Positions 24,310 through 31,564 of a stretch of 64,000 nucleotides of DNA are shown here, in pieces (position 1 is the first letter of the stretch; every line of letters begins with the position of its first letter). The DNA comes from Pocillopora damicornis. Taxonomy: Eukaryota. The stretch spans positions 1 to 64,000 of the forward strand of contig NW_020846127.1 in NCBI RefSeq assembly GCF_003704095.1. The letters are read 5' to 3'. The notes under the pieces were generated by a model. It worked only from the letters and a program-made list of their open reading frames with translations, was not told the DNA's origin and did not search any database. The translations under genes were made by a program, and so were the position numbers.

Positions 24310-25095
24310 AAGTTTTTTTTGTGATCTCCAGCGCAACTGATTTTGTTCCTAAAACTGAGATCTGTCCACCTGCCGCTCAGTTTTCCTTGATTGACACGAC
24401 TTAGCTCTCTCTCCCCTCCCTTCTCTTCACTCGGCACAGTAGATCACAATATAATAAGGGGGGGGGGAGGTTGCATCCTACAACTTTATCTACTCATTCC
24501 CGTGTTCAAAGTAATCCGCTGACTAAACACGTGCAGTTTAAGAGAGAGGCTCCGAAAGAATAAATTTATGAATGAATTTAAAATGAATTTGCAACATTAT
24601 TCGTTAATATTGGAAAAAATAATTAAAATGTCTGGTCATATTTATGATTTATAGCCAACAGAATTACGATCAGCTATACTTTCCGTTAAGGATAAATCTA
24701 CCTTAAAGTAGTGGCCGCGAATCGATTGCGGGCGCTGCTTCACTAAGATAAATTTGAGAAAGCAGTAACCCGCAACTGCGTGTGACTGAGTCAGCAGAAT
24801 TGCAAGGTTTAATTACACGTCGGGGAAAATAAACGCGTATCATGAAATCTTTTTAAAGGATTGCTTCTAATTGATGAGCATTAGAATGAATCACTGGTGA
24901 AGCGATTTTCATGACGTATTTAAAATTCAGTTTCCCCGGGTAATTAGATACTAAAGAAATTTCGTCATAATGGTGCTTTCGTATTATCGCTCTAGAATTG
25001 ATAAGAGGGCAATCGCGAACTTGTTCCGTTGTATTCCGTTGTTGTTTTTCTGTTACAACATTTTGTTTGAGTGAAGCTTATAGGAAAAGCGACCC

Positions 25096-25596
25096 ATGTA
25101 TCACGACTGTCACGACGACTATGATTATCACAGTGCTGAAGAAGAACTGTTTTGTCCGAGTAGTGCCGAAGCCTCACGAACAGATAACGATGGATTACGA
25201 AAAGGTCGCGATGATTCAGAAGAATCTATAGTTCTCCAAGACTACTATGATAATTTGCCAAGGCCAGGAAGTCCAACACGTGATGATTATATTCAGCAAC
25301 TGCTTGAAGCTTTAGACAAACAAGAGCAAGAGATTAAAGACCTTGACTACAAACTACAAGATTTACGGGGAGAGGTTCGGGAATACTTCTCAGGCTTGGA
25401 ACAGAAGCTGTCCTGCTTCGAGGAAAAAGTTGACTTTGTTATAACCTTGGTGTCCTCGTGGGTCAATCATCCGCCCAACAATCGGGGATGTCGAGGATCT
25501 TGTTCAAACCACGTACGAACGGATAACTGCTTGTGCCGTGGTTTGAAGGAACCTCATCGATGCTGTGGGCGTATTGGAGGAGTTTGTGCTTGTTAA
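25096..25596 (+). CDS. Uncharacterised 166-aa protein: acidic N-terminus, coiled coil, Cys-rich C-terminus
   Basis: Single ATG-initiated ORF; heptad-like segment YIQQLLEALDKQEQEIKDLDYKLQDLRGEV; C-terminus with 8 Cys. Confidence 0.55.
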   Translation: MYHDCHDDYDYHSAEEELFCPSSAEASRTDNDGLRKGRDDSEESIVLQDYYDNLPRPGSPTRDDYIQQLLEALDKQEQEIKDLDYKLQDLRGEVREYFSGLEQKLSCFEEKVDFVITLVSSWVNHPPNNRGCRGSCSNHVRTDNCLCRGLKEPHRCCGRIGGVCAC

Positions 25597-26490
25597 AAAT
25601 TGATCATCTTTAAAATTCTACTCACCAACCAACCCACGTTGTTCTAATACCAGTTGAGAGAAATTCTCTAACCATCGAAGCTGGTTCGTAACGACGACCG
25701 CTTGTTTTTTTTTCTTCGATAATTATACCTTATTTTCTCATTCAACAGTTTGTTTATGATCACTGTAATTTTGAGAATTTTTATCGAAACATTTTTGTCA
25801 CGTAACGTGACTTGCGCATATGAGACCACATGATCCTGTCAGGTTTGAGACACAACAAACACAAAGCTGTCGAAGCCTCTACTCGTAGTAAACTTTTGTA
25901 TATTTGCATTAACTGTTTTGGACATCTCACAGCGCATTGGTCCATCGTTACGATACTTAGATGTGTTCCAAGGTTCCTAAGCGTAAAATCCATACGTCAG
26001 CCATCTGATCGGCTATGAAGGTGTCTCTTGATCTGTCGGTCAATTTTCATTTCTTAGCTAAGCGCGCGGTATTAACTTGCGCAGTCTAATAAAATGAGAA
26101 GCTTCTCATGGTTTGTATGGTAGTACGCTTGGATAATACAGCACTCTCGTGAGCCAAATGCGCATTCCGATTAGAGCAATTTTTCACGCAGTCTCAAAAA
26201 CAGTCTCAATGGTCGATCAGAACTAACGAAAATATCACACGGAGCCAATCAGCACTCAAAGAAAAAAGGAGTACGGGAAAACGCGAGGGACTAAGTCTAT
26301 GGTTTTATCTTGGAGTCTAAGCATAGTTGGTTGAGAAGATGGCACACATTTTGAAGACATTTCACGGGGCGAATTACACCAAAACCATTCTAGTCTTTAA
26401 AAAAATCGAGCTCTTTTATTTCTCCTTTCACAACATTACAACGTGGCACAAAACAACTTTCTTTATACGCATTTCGTTCATGTGCGAGGG

Positions 26491-26554
26491 GACTGGTAAC
26501 AAATTCAAAAACCTACAAAAAAGCTTTACTGTAAGTTCGTCATAAAAACCCGTC
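26491..26554 (-). promoter_or_regulatory. SECIS element 2 of SelP-like gene B
   Basis: GACGGGT-TTTT-ATGAC-GAACTTACAG-TAAAGCTTTT-TTGTAGGTTTT-TGAA...ACCAGTC: core, helix II with one bulge, AAA loop. AATAAA ~70 nt further downstream (26415-26420). Confidence 0.7.
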
Positions 26555-26606
26555 TGAGATCTCGCGATGAAATGTTCTATTTCTCTGATTTCAACCGAAA
26601 ACTGAT

Positions 26607-26660
26607 GACTTCCATCCAAACAAACGGTTAACACTCTTTCCCGTTTATTCTTCATAAGTC
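26607..26660 (-). promoter_or_regulatory. SECIS element 1 of SelP-like gene B
   Basis: GACTT-ATGAA-GAATAAACGG-GAAAGAGTGTTAA-CCGTTTGTTT-GGAT-GG-AAGTC: AUGA/GA core, 10-bp helix II, AAA in the apical loop, helix I GACTT/AAGTC. Confidence 0.8.
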
Positions 26661-27229
26661 TTCATATTTGTAAAGGCTGAAACATAAGACTTCCCCACTA
26701 TCACAAATTCGGCACCAACTGTAAGGCATTGGAAAGGTGCTATGATTCGACTTTTTTTCTGCTACAGCAAATAATAATGAAAAAAAAGAGACCAAATAAG
26801 ACCCAGCTTTATATTATCATATTCATAGAGTTTTCATTAATGGACTTTCTACCGAATGCTATCGCTTGAGTTTGAAATTTTCTTTGATCTGTAATAGGCA
26901 CGGAAACAATTCCGTAAACGGACATAGAACAATCAAATTGCACGGAGCAATTTGATTGTTCCTCGAATCATTTTTTTGGCTTTCAGGGGGCAGATTCATT
27001 TCGCTTTGTTGTCCTTAAGGCTTTGTTACTTACTTTGCGGGCCTTATCGACTAGGAGCGACTAATTTCCTCTGGCGTTTAAGTCCAAATGAAGAAACTCT
27101 ACGACAAAATTCCTACCACGGAATTAACCCCCTCCCCCCTTAAAAGTTAAACCCTTGTGATAACCAACTAAACTCTACGGAAAGCGCGAAATCACATCAG
27201 TTTCATTCCAGACTTGAAGGCTGAGCATC

Positions 27230-28870
27230 TTACGGAGTGGTCACCTTGCCTTGAAATCGAGTTTTTTCTGGAGCAGGTTTGTTACACTGCGGGCAGTTTC
27301 TGTAAGCATCTTCGATGACTTTCCTGCAAATCAGCAAAAGACGAAAACTGGTTCAACGGGTTTCTAAAAATGTGGTATACGGGTTTGCCTAACACGCACG
27401 TTACAAAGAAACGGTTGTCCCAAATAGCAACGAAACTATCAGCAAAATTAATCTTCACTTGATTCCTGACAAAATTTAGCATTCTCAAAAGTGATAGACT
27501 TGTAATTTCTTTTCACAATATGTATGCATAATTTTAGCAAACAGGTGATAAGAAAAGAGAAACTTTCCGCCGGAGTCTTCTTGATTAAACAATTAATTCT
27601 CCTTTCTAATTTACCCGCAAATGAGTGAATTCTAGAAGAGAGAATTACTAATTTGATCTTAGTGGTTTAACCCTTTACCCCCAACATCAGTGTCTATATT
27701 CTCCATACTATTCATTATACATTTCCCAAGGTGCTGACAAAGAGAATTTGTTTAATAATCAAGAGCTGCTTCGGTTGATGATCATTTCCTTTATTCCCAT
27801 GACCTTAATGTTTGATTCAAGGGTGATGTTGTAAGGAGAAATTAAATTCTAGTCACTCTTACGAGTTAAAGGGTAAACTCACCATTCAAGACGGATATCC
27901 GAAGGATTTAAGGGAACTACTGGGAATAACTGGAGTTCCCCCTCAAGACTTCCGCAACGGTTATAAACAAATATTCCAGTCTTGTTCAAACCAAATTCTG
28001 TAGACAGGAGACCCGGGGTAGGCTCCTCGAACATGCCATCAGTTTGATTCCAGGACTGAGAGAAAACATTCTGGCCAACCACTGTCATGAAAACAATGTC
28101 ACCCATCTCGCTGTAGATGCGAAAAATGTGTGTAAGAATATAAAGAGCGGCTACTAATCCACTCGAGCCACAAGCCTGACCTTGATGCTTCGTGGGGAGA
28201 GCTATTTCTTCTTTTATTTTGATTAGGATAACCTGTTTTTATTGAGACAAGTGGGCTGAATTTTTTGGTAGGGAGCCCTACAGTGGTACCTTACTGGAAT
28301 TAAGTAATTGTCCTACTAACCGATTAACCTTTATCTTCCTCTGCGAAAGAAATCGCTCGGTAAACATTTATCCTTTAGAAAAGCCAACCTTAGAAACGTC
28401 AGCTCTCTTCCGTGGCGAATTTACATTATCAACTCAGTTGATTAAACCAATTGAAATTATCCATTTCGAAATAGTTGCTCGAGTATTATAGTAACCCCAC
28501 GCAGAGTGATTGAGCGAGAGGTGACGTAATCTTCGTCCGACGAGAGCGCCCCTATCTCTGTTGACAGCTGAACGAAAGAAATAACCGATGACTTTCGGTT
28601 GCACTCTTCACTAACGACTTACCTCCCCTTAGCGACCTCACGCATCTCGTCCATTTTCGCAATGGCCTTGACGCGACAGTCAGCCTGTCATCAGACTCTC
28701 TGCCGTCAAGCGGAGTTTATCACCCCTAGGACCACCACGGATCCCTGTGCCCGAGCGTCGAGCACTGGACCCATGGATGGCCGCTGTCATCGTCACCGTC
28801 AAAGAGAATCCGACAGCGACACACAAGCAAGCAGAGTGACGAAGAGGAATGCCAACATTCCCTTCGCCAT
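27230..28870 (-). CDS. Selenoprotein P-like gene B, 189 aa, six predicted Sec (U24, U26, U28, U55, U60, U61). Exons 28870-28623, 28110-27883, 27323-27230
   Basis: Hand translation: MAKGMLAFLFVTLLACVSLSDSLURURUQRPSMGPVLDARAQGSVVVLGVINSAURQRVUUQADCRVKAIAKMDEMREVAKGS/EMGDIVFMTVV...GIFVYNRCGSL...RLEW/KVIEDAYRNCPQCNKP...GKVTTP*. Both introns are phase 2 and exon 2 is 228 nt, identical to gene A. Two SECIS downstream. Confidence 0.82.
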
Positions 28871-30226
28871 GTTTCGATTTCTGCAATGTTTAAAGAAGGC
28901 AATGATTAACAATGATACATAACAGAATGTCAAAACAAATGCCTACTTCGGTAACATTTCAGGACTAATATTTATTCTAGATAATGTTGATTTAGAGATA
29001 AAAATTCCTTCAAGCTGCCATCAGAAGCTGGAAAGATCTTTTAGACTCTATTTTCTGATGATCAGAGATGTTTCTTGACTTAGTCTGAAGTTCTCCTTTC
29101 AAAAAGTACGTTTTGGTACGATGAGCTAATTGATTGAAAAATTGAGTCCTCTTCCCTCCCCCCCCCTCTCTCTTTTTTAACTGTTGTTCCCATAATGCCA
29201 CGCAAATATATTCCAACGAATGCTCTCAATGCTGAGAAGCATGCGTGACCACAGGATTGTGATATTGGTGTGACTTATTTCAACTGTCTTAGATTTAACT
29301 CCAGTTATTCAACAGTTAATAGTATAATCGTAACATATGACCGGAAGCAAGACTAAATATTTTAACAACGAAGCCTCTTTAAAACTTTCCAAGGCTAAAA
29401 ATTGCCTGATCGCGCGTGGTAGATGAGAAACTTTCATCAGAAAAGTTGTTCTCTTCCTTCCACCCAGGTGCCCGCAAGTAGTAGAGTCGTCACTCAGTGC
29501 GAAAAAGGTCGTGTGACGAGCTCAAACGACAGAAACAAAGGGGAATGGCTCACCAACCACTGTATGATTGTTTTTTTGCGTGCGCCTTGCGAAGAGTTTC
29601 AAGCGTGATTTCATTTTGCGTGCTAAAATTTCAAACTATTTTCGAAAGCAAGACGCGAGTGAAATTACACATCAAACAGAGCAGAATAGGTTTAAATTAC
29701 ATCACGCGCCTTGGAATCGAGTTTCAATATCTAATTTGAGAAAGATCCATCTATTTTCCTTTAAACAGCAAAACCTCTCTAATGAGTGGTTACTCCCGGA
29801 AAAATAAGCCAGACGACTGTTTTACATGGATTGTCCATTTCATGGAGGTTGACTTGCTTTTAATCATTATTTCGTTTGGAAAGTTCTTTGCGTTCTTGAC
29901 CTGTAAAATGTATAGGTAATCACGTAACATAATATATCAACGGAAAAAGTTGATATATTCCTCTTCTGCATCGAAATTTGAGGACCATAGACTCTCGATG
30001 TATTCTTCAAAATCATAAGAACTATTACATAAAGCTGAGTAATTTGTGAAAAAAGTTTTCTTTCCTAGCCCTGTTGCGAAACGAAAATTTAAGAGGTACA
30101 GCGAATACTAAAAGCTCGAACTATTGTCGCGCGTTCCAATCTGTTTGAATTTAATTGTACACACGATTTCGCAAACTTGACTGAAATAGTTCCGTTTAGC
30201 TTACTTAATTAAGAAGGAGTTGGTTA

Positions 30227-30255
30227 AGAAGAAGAAGAAGAAGAAAAAGAAGAAG
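30227..30255 (+). repeat. (GAA)n microsatellite
   Basis: aagaagaagaagaagaagaaaaagaagaag. Confidence 0.85.
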
Positions 30256-31564
30256 GTTGTTTGTTGCCCAACGTCGCCTCGATGACCCGCGACGGCTCAA
30301 TCACATATCTGAGAGACTGAACGCTCTGCGTTAAGAGAAGACGGGTGTTGCATTCTTCTATCCTAGACAGGCTTTATAATTTTGCGCGAAGGTGTTACAG
30401 GAAATGGCTGCAAACAGAGATTTCATTTTCTACAAAGGAAAGGCATTTTTGGAACTCCTTATCCTTGGGAGAGTCAGGTTTTTAAAAACCCCTGTCCTAA
30501 AAATTTATCGGGTACAACCCTTCCAGTTTGATGGCAAGAAAAGCTAGAGCTGGTTAAGCGTAGTAAGCTAGCGTTTTAAGCTAGATTTTGGTCGAAAAAG
30601 GGGCAATCGACATAGAATAATATGCGAATTCTGTACTTACGGCTTACAGCGTGACTGCTTTGTCCTGGTCGATTTGCCGACTAATGCTGACAATCCGGTT
30701 TCACCGGTGATAAATCTGCCCTCGCAGCAAGTGTCCAATTGTTGACAAGGAGTCATGTTATTTCTGCATGATCCAATTACAGAGTACTCTCAACCTGCGC
30801 GTGACAAGCCAGTGGAAAAAAATCGCCCGCGGTGAGTCCAAAGAACGAGTTATAAACATAGGGTCATAACGTGACTTTCCCCAGACGCGCTCCAGACGAG
30901 GCTTAATGTAGAGATCTCATGTACACGCGCGCAGATAAATACATATGAAGGTGAATGAATGGAAATGTGGGTATATGAAGGAGAGTGAATATATACTTCA
31001 TATAACTTTGTAAATCACATTTTGGAACTCTTGGTGGGTATATACATAAGATCTTTCCCCCACGAGAAATGACCCCACGAAAAATACTAAGCTAAAAATT
31101 AACTTTATTCTTTCAACGGAGATCAGGCAAAGGATGGGACTCTAAGCCACTGGGGAAAAGAGTGAGCCGAGAGAAACGGGGAAAAATTTGTAAAGAGCGC
31201 TCTGAGTAATGACTGAGGACGGATCTTTCAAGATTTTTATGATTAGTAAACTGATTTAACAAGGGGAGTCGTTAATTCTTTCTTTTATTAATCTAAACAG
31301 AGAAGCCTTGGCTTAGGCGCCTGGTATAAGCAACCGGCGGCTCTATATATCCGCTCTCGATGATTTAACCCCCAACTTCTCTCCACAGTATCACACCTGA
31401 ATCAAACAGTTCATGAGAATACAGGGAATGATCAGTCAGTTAAGAAGCTCTTGATTGTCTAACATATTCTCTTTGTCAGTAACATTGGAATGTACAGAGA
31501 ACAGTGTGGAGAAAATGCATTATGATCAAGGGGTGCAGTGAAGCTGAGTAGATGCTTAGTGTTG

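Follow-up and report, generated by a model that had tools for sequence, protein, structure and literature searches.

The question raised by this locus is whether six in-frame TGA triplets crowded into the first 61 codons of a gene resembling selenoprotein P are read as selenocysteine (Sec, U), and what kind of protein would result. The gene lies on the minus strand of the window, by which we mean the whole 64-kb stretch of Pocillopora damicornis DNA analysed here (contig NW_020846127.1, positions 1 to 64,000). It has three exons spanning 28870-27230, and its 570 coding nucleotides give 189 codons and a stop, with TGAs at codons 24, 26, 28, 55, 60 and 61 and a terminal TAA. The coding part of exon 1 (28623..28870) starts with ATG at 28870-28868 and runs without TAA or TAG to a donor, AG/GTAAGT, at 28623/28622 in phase 2. 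In order, it encodes a leader (codons 1 to ~20), the segment U-R-U-R-U-QRP, a beta-strand VVVLGVINSA, the loop U-RQRV-UU-QAD-C, and the start of a helix. The first three Sec codons are at 28799..28801 (Sec1, codon 24), 28793..28795 (Sec2, codon 26, supported by the sequence and the ortholog table) and 28787..28789 (Sec3, codon 28). Sec4 (codon 55, 28706..28708) comes immediately after the beta-1 strand, and a tandem TGA TGA (codons 60-61, 28688..28693; Sec5 and Sec6) is followed by QAD and Cys64, a TGT at 28676..28678.

RNA contigs from four runs in four studies match exactly these three exons, with splice joints and a poly(A) end, and show that the three-exon mRNA is real, polyadenylated and highly transcribed. 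Exon 1 is covered by contigs from 28623 to 28880 or 28897, and those of X1 and X9 retain all six TGAs unchanged. Intron 1 (GT..AG, 28111..28622) is removed in three runs by a joint from 28623 to 28110 that skips 512 nt, and intron 2 (GT..AG, 27324..27882) in 4/4 runs by a joint that skips 559 nt. Depth in the exon contigs is in the hundreds to thousands, against ~6-16 for intron-spanning contigs, those across intron 1 having ~8-16. A repeat-like segment lies within intron 1 at ~28334-28527, and a dispersed repeat, on both flanks of which RNA contigs show loose ends, within intron 2 at ~27679-27861. Exon 2 (27883..28110, 228 nt, phase 2/2) encodes a conserved N-x-T sequon (WNQTD) and the motif FVYNRCG, and the coding part of exon 3 (27230..27323) encodes WKVIEDAYRN-CPQC-...TTP before the TAA at 27232-27230. 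There is no Sec-rich C-terminal tail, as the TAA falls 30 codons into exon 3 and the mRNA then continues as 3'UTR to the poly(A) with no further joint. This 3'UTR is ~839 nt long (26391..27229) and carries an AATAAA signal at 26415..26420; cleavage is at ~26391, where the X9 contig closes in 22 consecutive T, read on the plus strand. The 5'UTR is short (28871..28897, the X9 contig reaching 28897) and the leader is variable: at least one run uses an acceptor-like ttgcag whose last letter is at 28881, the X5 contig stops matching at 28880 with unlike letters beyond, and the X6 contig extends to 29186. The gene is single-copy in the genome. A preliminary description, made from the sequence alone, had given the TGA coordinates, the frame free of TAA and TAG, the splice and exons 2 and 3, and all of these features are present; mapping of RNA to the three exons, a check proposed beforehand, confirmed them, exon 1 included.

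The TGAs are conserved in other corals. Across twelve orthologous sequences of Robusta-type and Acroporidae-type lineages, UGA is invariant at five positions (Sec1, for example, is present in 12/12 tabulated sequences), and at the sixth only Cys takes its place. All six TGAs are found in transcripts L001-L003 and genomic loci L007-L010, and Sec4 is TGT (Cys) in a single lineage, L004/L005. The deep-branching transcripts L012/13 and the Acropora-cluster transcripts L015/16 have seven TGAs, since Cys64, which is TGT elsewhere or TGC in L014, is TGA in these two lineages; L014 has six. In the tree, L012/13, L014 and L015/16 branch outside the Pocillopora/Orbicella clade, and the orthologs recovered, which include Orbicella-like, Acropora-like and deep lineages, reach a synonymous divergence of ~1 or more. 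Exon 1 has a dN/dS of 0.14-0.64 with dS up to 1.0-1.5, and the coding sequence to either side of the TGAs has dN/dS below 1, the segments between them being conserved in frame. Exon 1 was not recognisable in L011, for which only 1.1 kb of upstream sequence is available. Sec/Cys exchange at two positions is thus demonstrated, and the UGAs, the surrounding frame and two 3'UTR SECIS elements are kept across distantly related stony corals. The expectation that the TGAs would be conserved or exchange with Cys in other corals was in this way met, with dN/dS below 1. The earlier emphasis on Secs interleaved with Arg was only partly borne out: Arg separates the first Secs in Pocillopora only, and Q, P or S takes its place elsewhere. 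The conserved feature is instead the C that follows 59/60 non-tandem TGAs, whichever residue comes next (R, Q, P, H or L).

The two SECIS elements lie close together in the distal 3'UTR. SECIS 1 (26598..26672, minus strand) has an ATGA core at 26655-26652 and GA on the 3' side, and SECIS 2 (26482..26567, minus strand) has its ATGA core at 26543-26540 and TGAA on the 3' side; each has 12 nt to an apical AAA and a 10-bp helix 2. Between species only the distal 3'UTR aligns, from ~445-560 to ~760-816 nt past the stop, and both elements are inside this block. Pairing is kept at 91.3% and 98.4% in the two elements, against 33-55% in slid controls, and compensatory pairs were 31/49 GC<->AU and 23/70 GU<->UG, in 7-8 related sequences with few double changes. 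Both elements recur in the deep-branching L014, at 55.9 and 53.5 bits with models built without L014. Support from the general family model is weaker. Searches of short regions with Rfam SECIS_1 gave full-length matches of 19-32 bits at the SECIS sites, under the 35-bit gathering score; SECIS 2 scored 19.1 bits and the L003 ortholog of SECIS 1 scored 31.8 bits, SECIS 1 being listed only through its ortholog and not through the window's own copy. At gathering thresholds Rfam had no match anywhere in the 64-kb window, and when 16 kb was searched with E as high as 10 the SECIS_1 signal was swamped; only the short-region searches brought out the sub-threshold matches. The SECIS comparison leaves out Acropora, Montipora, L001/2 and L012/13. 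The contigs of Acropora, L001/2 and L012/13 end too early, the Acropora-cluster contig L015 stopping 484 nt into the 3'UTR without a poly(A) tail. The genome also contains two tRNA-SeC(tca) genes (77.8 bits, confirmed by ARAGORN). The UGAs behave as Sec codons, because they are conserved, exchange with Cys and are accompanied by two SECIS elements and by tRNA-Sec in the genome. Two SECIS elements are a hallmark of selenoprotein P genes, and are described as a trait of SelP genes (PMC3473315).

Membership of the SelP family rests on several similarities. With Pfam SelP_N (PF04592), searched with stop-free pieces only and each exon separately, the best match had E=0.0017, and such bit scores as were reported, 11-15, fall short of the 23.2-bit cutoff; SelP_N was nevertheless the sole recurring Pfam family, in 8/17 members, although below the gathering score on every piece scored. 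The nearest Atlas clusters by language-model features are SelP-like and SelPb. Closer evidence comes from a neighbouring SelP gene, gene A, on the same strand (exon 1 from an ATG at ~42521, with CQRP and LAS-U-QF-C; exon 2 at 41891-41664; exon 3 ending at ~40989; a SECIS at ~40215-40290). It sits 13 kb from the six-TGA gene. Against gene A, the exon-1 piece gives E=5e-6 and exon 2, by hhalign, E=1.3e-5. The two genes share a pair of phase-2 introns placed at homologous positions and a 228-nt exon 2, and both encode QRP...VVxLG, F-x-x-D/N-R-C-G and an exon-3 CxxC. The gene A SECIS is related to SECIS 1 (28.3 bits, E=3.6e-4). Gene A differs in having a single Sec in a canonical UxxC, Cys where the six-TGA gene has Sec3, a Thr/Ser-rich C-terminal extension and a strong SelP_N match (1.6e-17). 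The protein is very probably a divergent SelP_N-type domain, the product of a transcribed and spliced paralog that has no C-terminal tail. It is an N-domain-type member only and not a full-length SELENOP, because the C-terminal His-rich/Sec-rich domain is absent. Signs of secretion are a conserved leader, M-A-x-G-I-L-x-F-L-V-V-A-L-L-A, followed by small polar residues (the signal peptide was judged by eye), and the N-x-T sequon together with this hydrophobic leader fits secretion. AlphaFold2, given the stop-free 117-aa part and 17 sequences, returned a low-confidence model (pLDDT 54.5) in which the order of helices and strands fits the later part of a thioredoxin fold.

Which Sec corresponds to the catalytic one is ambiguous. 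U55 after VVVLGVINSA parallels the U after VVLLGLMLAS in gene A, in a modified UxxC context, but the loop from U61 reads U61-x3-C64 in Pocillopora, an exact UxxC in L014 and UxxU in L012/13 and L015/16. U55 may not be the catalytic Sec because one ortholog has UU-QA-C and two others have UU-QA-U; both U55 and U61 remain candidates, and we regard U61...C64 as the probable equivalent of the canonical motif. The initial proposal that U55 is the catalytic Sec therefore held only in part. The other proposals on homology fared better: the alignment of exon 2 with that of the neighbouring SelP, with the same length and phases, was upheld, as were the alignment of U28 (Sec3) with the Cys of CQRP in gene A and the description of the gene as a SelP paralog without a C-terminal tail. 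The proposed signal peptide stands as a signal-peptide-like leader, by inspection, and the suggested SelP_N profile search gave the sub-threshold matches described above.

It is highly probable overall that the product is a secreted protein, 189 residues long, with Sec at all six UGAs, and that the Secs form a redox relay or metal centre, although selenium incorporation is unproven and the function inferred, there being no protein-level evidence. A Se-carrier, redox or metal-binding role had been suggested at the outset, and this remains an inference. In the mechanism that we propose, the two SECIS elements would recruit the Sec-insertion machinery, each UGA, in its UGA-C context, would be a poor terminator, and together these features would let ribosomes insert Sec at 3+1+2 close sites in the first 61 codons. 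After cleavage of the signal peptide the product would be a thioredoxin-fold, SelP_N-type domain with no Sec-rich tail, with a flexible U-x-U-x-U arm at its mature N-terminus and, in place of the UxxC of canonical SelP, a larger redox loop of the form U-x(4-8)-U-U-x(2-3)-C/U. The Secs may form a selenol/diselenide redox relay or a metal-chelating centre in an extracellular or ER-lumen oxidoreductase. We favour a redox relay or metal centre over bulk selenium cargo because the number and spacing of the Secs have been fixed over deep time, unlike the fast-changing tails of SELENOP.

Known selenoproteins share parts of this arrangement. Nearly all have one Sec, and the multi-Sec cases have either the variable C-terminal tail of SELENOP or only two to four Secs. 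Vertebrate SELENOP, which combines SelP_N (PF04592) with a Sec-rich C-terminal domain, is likewise secreted with a thioredoxin-like N-terminal domain, a Sec just past beta-1, a D/N-R-C-G motif, a Cys pair after the domain, two 3'UTR SECIS elements and multiple Secs per chain. In contrast, the coral protein lacks a His-rich or Sec-rich C-terminal domain and has all its Secs within residues 1-61, in a number that is fixed where that of SELENOP varies; its UxxC is widened to U-x(4-8)-UU-x(2-3)-C/U, a UxUxU is added at the mature N-terminus, and its SelP_N match is sub-threshold on the pieces that could be scored. Fish SELENOP2 (SelPb), among the nearest clusters, is also short, tail-less, SelP_N-only and the paralog of a second SelP gene, but has one Sec in UxxC rather than six or seven. 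Amphioxus 3NSelP shows N-terminal Sec gain, two SECIS elements and a tandem SelP neighbour (PMC3473315), and is similar in that its extra Secs are in the N-terminal part rather than in the tail only; there, however, the whole Trx-like domain is triplicated with one Sec each, whereas the coral protein has six or seven in a single domain. In the lamprey, SELENOP2 (CXXU, 139-162 UGAs; PMC13134290) likewise illustrates how a lineage can remodel both the redox motif of its SelP paralogs and their Sec content, although its expansion is in a long Sec-rich region while the coral protein is compact, with a fixed number of N-terminal Secs. The U-Q-A-U of L012/13 and the Acropora cluster is a UxxU diselenide-type motif such as that carried by SelL (cited in PMC3473315), and the adjacent UU is analogous to the vicinal Cys-Sec redox pair on the mobile arm of thioredoxin reductase, whose Cys-Sec pair is C-terminal; in both cases the protein families differ. 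To our knowledge, no protein combines UxUxU, UU and UxxC/U.

Among the alternatives, the one that survives best is that carrying or storing selenium is the protein's main role, making it a mini selenoprotein P whose Sec-rich 'tail' has moved to the front, with Secs as cargo for coral cells or algal symbionts. In its favour are the SelP_N family and two SECIS elements as in SELENOP, the apparent secretion, and the neighbouring paralog that keeps the ordinary single-Sec form; U-R-U may also resemble motifs in the tail of human SELENOP. Against it, lineages separated by a dS of 1 or more show essentially no change in the spacing of their Secs or in their number (6-7), whereas SELENOP tails vary widely among species (PMC8744743), three Secs are in or beside the thioredoxin-fold active-site loop, and the Sec/Cys exchanges fall exactly at redox-motif positions. 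We consider this reading unlikely. Much less probable is that translation starts at Met72, the upstream region being a 5' leader in which codons 1-23 are a short regulatory uORF closed by the first UGA. The NCBI model and those of orthologs do begin there or at the homologous Met, and no protein data oppose it. However, the inter-UGA segments are conserved in frame with dN/dS below 1 and have homologous counterparts in gene A, namely its beta-1 strand and QRP motif, the product would be without a signal peptide and active-site loop, and the conserved SECIS pair, UGA-C contexts and Sec/Cys exchange would be left unexplained. It is also very improbable that near-cognate tRNAs (Trp, Cys or Arg) simply allow read-through of the UGAs, with no selenium involved. 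UGA-C is the leakiest eukaryotic stop context and 59/60 UGAs have it, but six or seven successive leaky events would give a negligible yield, two SECIS elements are conserved and tRNA-Sec is present, and exchange is specifically with Cys. Finally, decay of a duplicate of the neighbouring SelP, with TGAs as nonsense mutations (for example CGA to TGA), would be compatible with the canonical paralog 13 kb away and with the several TGAs beside CGN codons in Pocillopora, but can be almost entirely dismissed given that the TGAs are common to all recovered lineages, Acropora-type included, that dN/dS stays below 1 to either side, and that the gene is single-copy with an abundant, correctly spliced transcript.

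Existing annotation has hidden the Sec-bearing part of this family. By protein identity the gene corresponds to Pocillopora damicornis LOC113676882, for which NCBI XP_027049421.1 is a 117-aa fragment starting at Met72; NCBI models of orthologs begin at the homologous Met, and all public models found (Pocillopora, Orbicella, Acropora, Montipora) are truncated and named "uncharacterized protein", without signal peptide or Secs. The prediction that gene finders would truncate or miss the gene was thus correct as to truncation, and the family exposes a systematic annotation error. A profile search of 1.84 billion proteins gave 21 matches. The five long matches (P0029-P0033) were set aside as spurious; scans of four of them showed PPR, WD40 or LRR repeat proteins. 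P0087 (190 aa), a candidate full-length Cys form, was rejected as its ORF reads through an intron. Look-up of Montipora P0020 and Acropora millepora P0073 returned no database record. Nothing relevant was found in the literature searched for coral selenoprotein papers or for the gene and protein accessions, a coverage that did not include the metazoan SelenoP survey of Baclaocos et al. 2019 (PMC6885538).

A bolder form of our preferred reading, that of a redox relay or metal centre, is that stony corals hold an unrecognised class of compact secreted poly-Sec protein, with one thioredoxin-fold domain, a UxUxU arm and a vicinal UU fused to UxxC/UxxU, which is older than the split of the two major coral clades and whose selenium chemistry, such as a multi-selenol relay or a selenolate metal site, is unlike that of any characterised selenoprotein. 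We see this as no more probable than its opposite; if true, ribosomes would have to insert Sec efficiently and processively at three alternate codons among the first 30. The arrangement itself, in which a coral protein that is small, abundant and secreted carries a constant six or seven Secs near its N-terminus, is new, and offers a natural test case for how ribosomes decode close UGAs (UGA-x-UGA-x-UGA and UGA-UGA) very early in an mRNA, which bears on the contribution of the uniform UGA-C context and of two SECIS elements. It also hints at unexplored selenium biology in reef-building corals, which may involve oxidative stress, metal binding and selenium traffic in the holobiont.

The six-Sec gene lies on the minus strand, and on our reading of the sequence its frame opens at the ATG at 28870 with a hydrophobic leader, followed by in-frame TGAs at codons 24, 26, 28, 55, 60 and 61. 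Exon 1 runs, free of in-frame TAA or TAG, to the donor AG/GTAAGT at 28623; phase-2 splicing keeps the frame into exon 2 (28110-27883, 228 nt), and exon 3 (27323-27230) holds CPQC and ends in a TAA stop, giving a coding length of 570 nt, or 189 codons. The joined exons were translated only as a local check of frame, and database searches used the exons separately. To assess transcription, contigs from four public RNA runs, each from a different study, were compared with 26200-32000 of the window. Contigs with depths of hundreds to thousands span 26391/26411-27324, 27882-28110 and 28623-28880/28897, while those across the introns reach a depth of only about 6-16. All four runs contain the joint 27323/27882, and three contain 28110/28623, both reading CT..AC on the plus strand and thus GT..AG on the strand of the gene. 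One contig stops at 26391 in a T run, the poly(A) tail, 24 nt past AATAAA (26420-26415). All six TGAs are present in the mRNA contigs of run X1 (zero differences) and run X9 (two differences, neither in a TGA). The transcript is therefore real, and its three exons, exon 1 included, are confirmed. The preliminary description had placed six TGAs in a frame from this ATG without TAA or TAG, which held exactly, and had proposed the phase-2 splice into a 228-nt exon and on to an exon with CPQC, which held. Its claim that gene predictors would truncate or miss the gene also held: by cluster look-up, NCBI entries of the family are only fragments of about 116-118 aa named 'uncharacterized protein', from Pocillopora damicornis (XP_027049421.1 / RMX41488.1, identical to residues 72-189 of our model), P. 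verrucosa, P. meandrina, Orbicella faveolata, five Acropora species and Montipora capricornis, and all begin downstream of the last UGA.

Two intronic islands at about 27679-27861 and 28334-28527 are covered at depths of hundreds to thousands by contigs whose sequence on both sides is unlike the window; we rejected them as alternative exons, since these loose ends indicate dispersed repeats whose RNA comes from other genomic loci. The three non-identical runs differ from the window by about 1.3% in coding sequence and 1.8% in the 3'UTR. Transcripts of related corals carry a 14-nt insertion after 26788 (X9) and an 8-nt insertion after 29053 (runs X5 and X6), and the two exon-1 differences of X9 are amino-acid replacements, V66A at 28671 and L37P at 28761, the second of which X6 shares.

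The gene is single-copy in the assembly. Exon 2 alone as query returned 15 short predictions at 68-99% identity, and more distant orthologs came from a profile run against 1.84 billion proteins. In every ortholog the DNA 5' of exon 2 encodes, in order, a leader (MATGILKFLVVALLA...), the motif U-x-U-x-U-Q-[LR]-[PS], a conserved segment that closes with VVVLGxIxSx, and U-x(4-8)-U-U-Q-A-(D/E)-C/U. Of the six TGA positions only the fourth varies, being TGT (Cys) in L004/L005 and TGA in their close relatives L006/L007; the position of Cys64, the Cys after the tandem UU, is TGC in the deep-branching transcript L014 and TGA in the deep-branching L012/13 and the Acropora cluster L015/16, which thus have seven Secs. 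Exon 1 dN/dS is 0.14-0.64 in 36 of 36 pairs with dS up to 1.0-1.5, values at which unconstrained stop codons could not have persisted. The preliminary description had proposed checking in other corals whether the TGAs are conserved or exchange with Cys and whether dN/dS is below 1 downstream; conservation and Cys exchange held, and exon 1 dN/dS is below 1. In a maximum-likelihood tree, Pocillopora, Orbicella and L001-L011 form a single clade with good support, and Acropora, Montipora, L012, L014 and others lie outside it. Established taxonomy divides scleractinians into two major clades, Robusta and Complexa, and the tree placement taken with this taxonomy implies that the family covers both.

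Sequence around the UGAs and in the 3'UTR is consistent with decoding. Among 72 UGAs from 12 sequences, 12 precede the second UGA of a pair, and the next nucleotide is C at 59 of the remaining 60. The residue after the UGA varies (R, Q, P, H, L) while the C stays, so it is the nucleotide that is constrained; among eukaryotic termination contexts, UGA-C is the weakest. The 3'UTR can be aligned between species only distally, from about 445-560 to 760-816 nt past the stop, and there (26491-26660 region examined) two hairpins share one layout: a lower helix, an ATGA core with GA on the 3' side, an upper helix of 10 bp and, 12 nt from the core, an apical AAA. Across seven sequences, excluding those of Acropora and Montipora whose 3' ends were not reached, 91.3% of cells pair in SECIS 1 and 98.4% in SECIS 2, and shifting the partner by 1-3 columns lowers this to 33-55%. 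Two-sided changes preserving the pair are seen at 31/49 in SECIS 1 (GC, AU, GU) and at 23/70 in SECIS 2 (UG to GU). Rfam SECIS_1 aligns full-length at both sites with all scores under its 35-bit threshold (window SECIS 2, 19.1 bits; SECIS 1 and 2 of ortholog L003, 31.8 and 21.1; L014 SECIS 2, 21.4). Covariance models trained without L014 find both elements in it, at 55.9 and 53.5 bits. A tRNA search over the assembly (234,350,878 bases, 4,393 contigs) found two tRNA-SeC(tca) genes.

Pfam SelP_N, also a proposed check, matched the stop-free pieces of the gene only weakly and under cutoff (best E=0.0017), but was the sole Pfam family to recur (8 of 17 members). The exon-1 piece matches gene A, the neighbouring SelP paralog, at E=5e-6, and the family profile matches gene A exon 2 at E=1.3e-5, an exon that itself matches SelP_N strongly (1.6e-17); the closest language-model clusters are 'selenoprotein P-like' and 'Selenoprotein Pb'. 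Gene A (exon 1 from about 42521, exon 2 41891-41664) shares the strand, the intron phases and a 228-nt exon 2. These matches and the identical exon structure indicate a divergent, N-domain-only SelP paralog. In contrast to the six-Sec gene, gene A has the canonical LAS-U-QF-C, and CQRP in place of UQRP, so the proposed match of U28 to this Cys held. Gene A (42521-40989, minus) is apparently single-Sec, its exon 3 leading into a Thr/Ser-rich stretch; no Sec-rich tail was seen up to the true stop at about 40989. About 700 nt past that stop its 3'UTR has a well-formed SECIS (40223-40279, about 40215-40290; ATGA...AAA...GATG, lower helix CTTTGA/TCAAAG). The SECIS 1 model of the six-Sec gene matches it at 28.3 bits, marking the two elements as related, and it is the only SECIS found for gene A.

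The preliminary description aligned U55 with the catalytic Sec, which remains ambiguous. The distance from Cys64 to the exon end, 18 residues, equals that of the UxxC Cys in gene A, and L014 has UU-QA-C at this site. U61 and C64 may therefore form the canonical redox pair, in which case U55 and U60 would be additions. It is also possible that U55 is the old catalytic Sec, in a loop lengthened by seven residues. Interleaving of Sec with Arg, also claimed, held only in part, being true of Pocillopora but not of orthologs with Q, P, H or L.

Near the gene, a plus-strand ORF at about 25095-25560 (starting MYHDCHDDYDYH...), acidic, then coiled-coil-like with a Cys-rich end, converges on its 3' end. 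In L004-L006, L008 and L010 a gene on the opposite strand, coding for 162-175 aa, occupies the corresponding place, which indicates a syntenic neighbourhood. Two other corals have an opsin-like GPCR (7tm_1) gene upstream of their ortholog (L004 1-10, L008 1-279), synteny that favours orthology. The proximal, non-conserved 3'UTR has a perfect 15-bp inverted repeat at 26927-26961 (GAACAATCAAATTGC...GCAATTTGATTGTTC). At 32637-32707 an inverted repeat, nearly perfect over about 29 bp, forms a G+C-rich hairpin (UAGCCUACGUGUAGCC...GGGGGG), possibly a MITE end, palindromic repeat or hairpin RNA; several microRNA precursor models matched it, on both strands, well under thresholds (best 46 bits vs 76).

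Reviews describe SELENOP as having one Sec in a thioredoxin-like domain and a variable Sec-rich C-terminal domain (PMC8744743). A survey of metazoans detected no SelP in Nematostella and reported an amphioxus SelP whose N-terminal Secs are multiplied through domain triplication (PMC3473315); lamprey SELENOP2 has CXXU and >130 UGAs (PMC13134290). A UxUxU/UU cluster in a single N-domain is undescribed in these three papers; Baclaocos et al. 2019, the survey likeliest to have met this gene, was outside our comparison, and prior description is not excluded.

The mRNA, conserved UGAs, SECIS pair and tRNA-Sec are shown; what follows is inferred. The SECIS pair and UGA-C contexts may permit processive Sec insertion at 3+1+2 sites, without protein-level evidence as yet. 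The leader, judged by eye, would be cut near SLS|DSL, and a conserved N-x-T sequon is compatible with secretory-pathway transit. The mature protein would carry a U-x-U-x-U arm which, if extended, would set three selenols on alternate residues along one face, and a vicinal UU beside a UxxC/UxxU centre where helix 1 begins, although the structure model is of low confidence. The number of Secs and their spacing have stayed fixed since deep time, and the sites of Sec/Cys exchange belong to the redox motif. On these grounds, and as a matter of judgement, we lean without great confidence towards a catalytic or chelating role for the Secs; selenium cargo is a reading that we think unlikely and rank lower.
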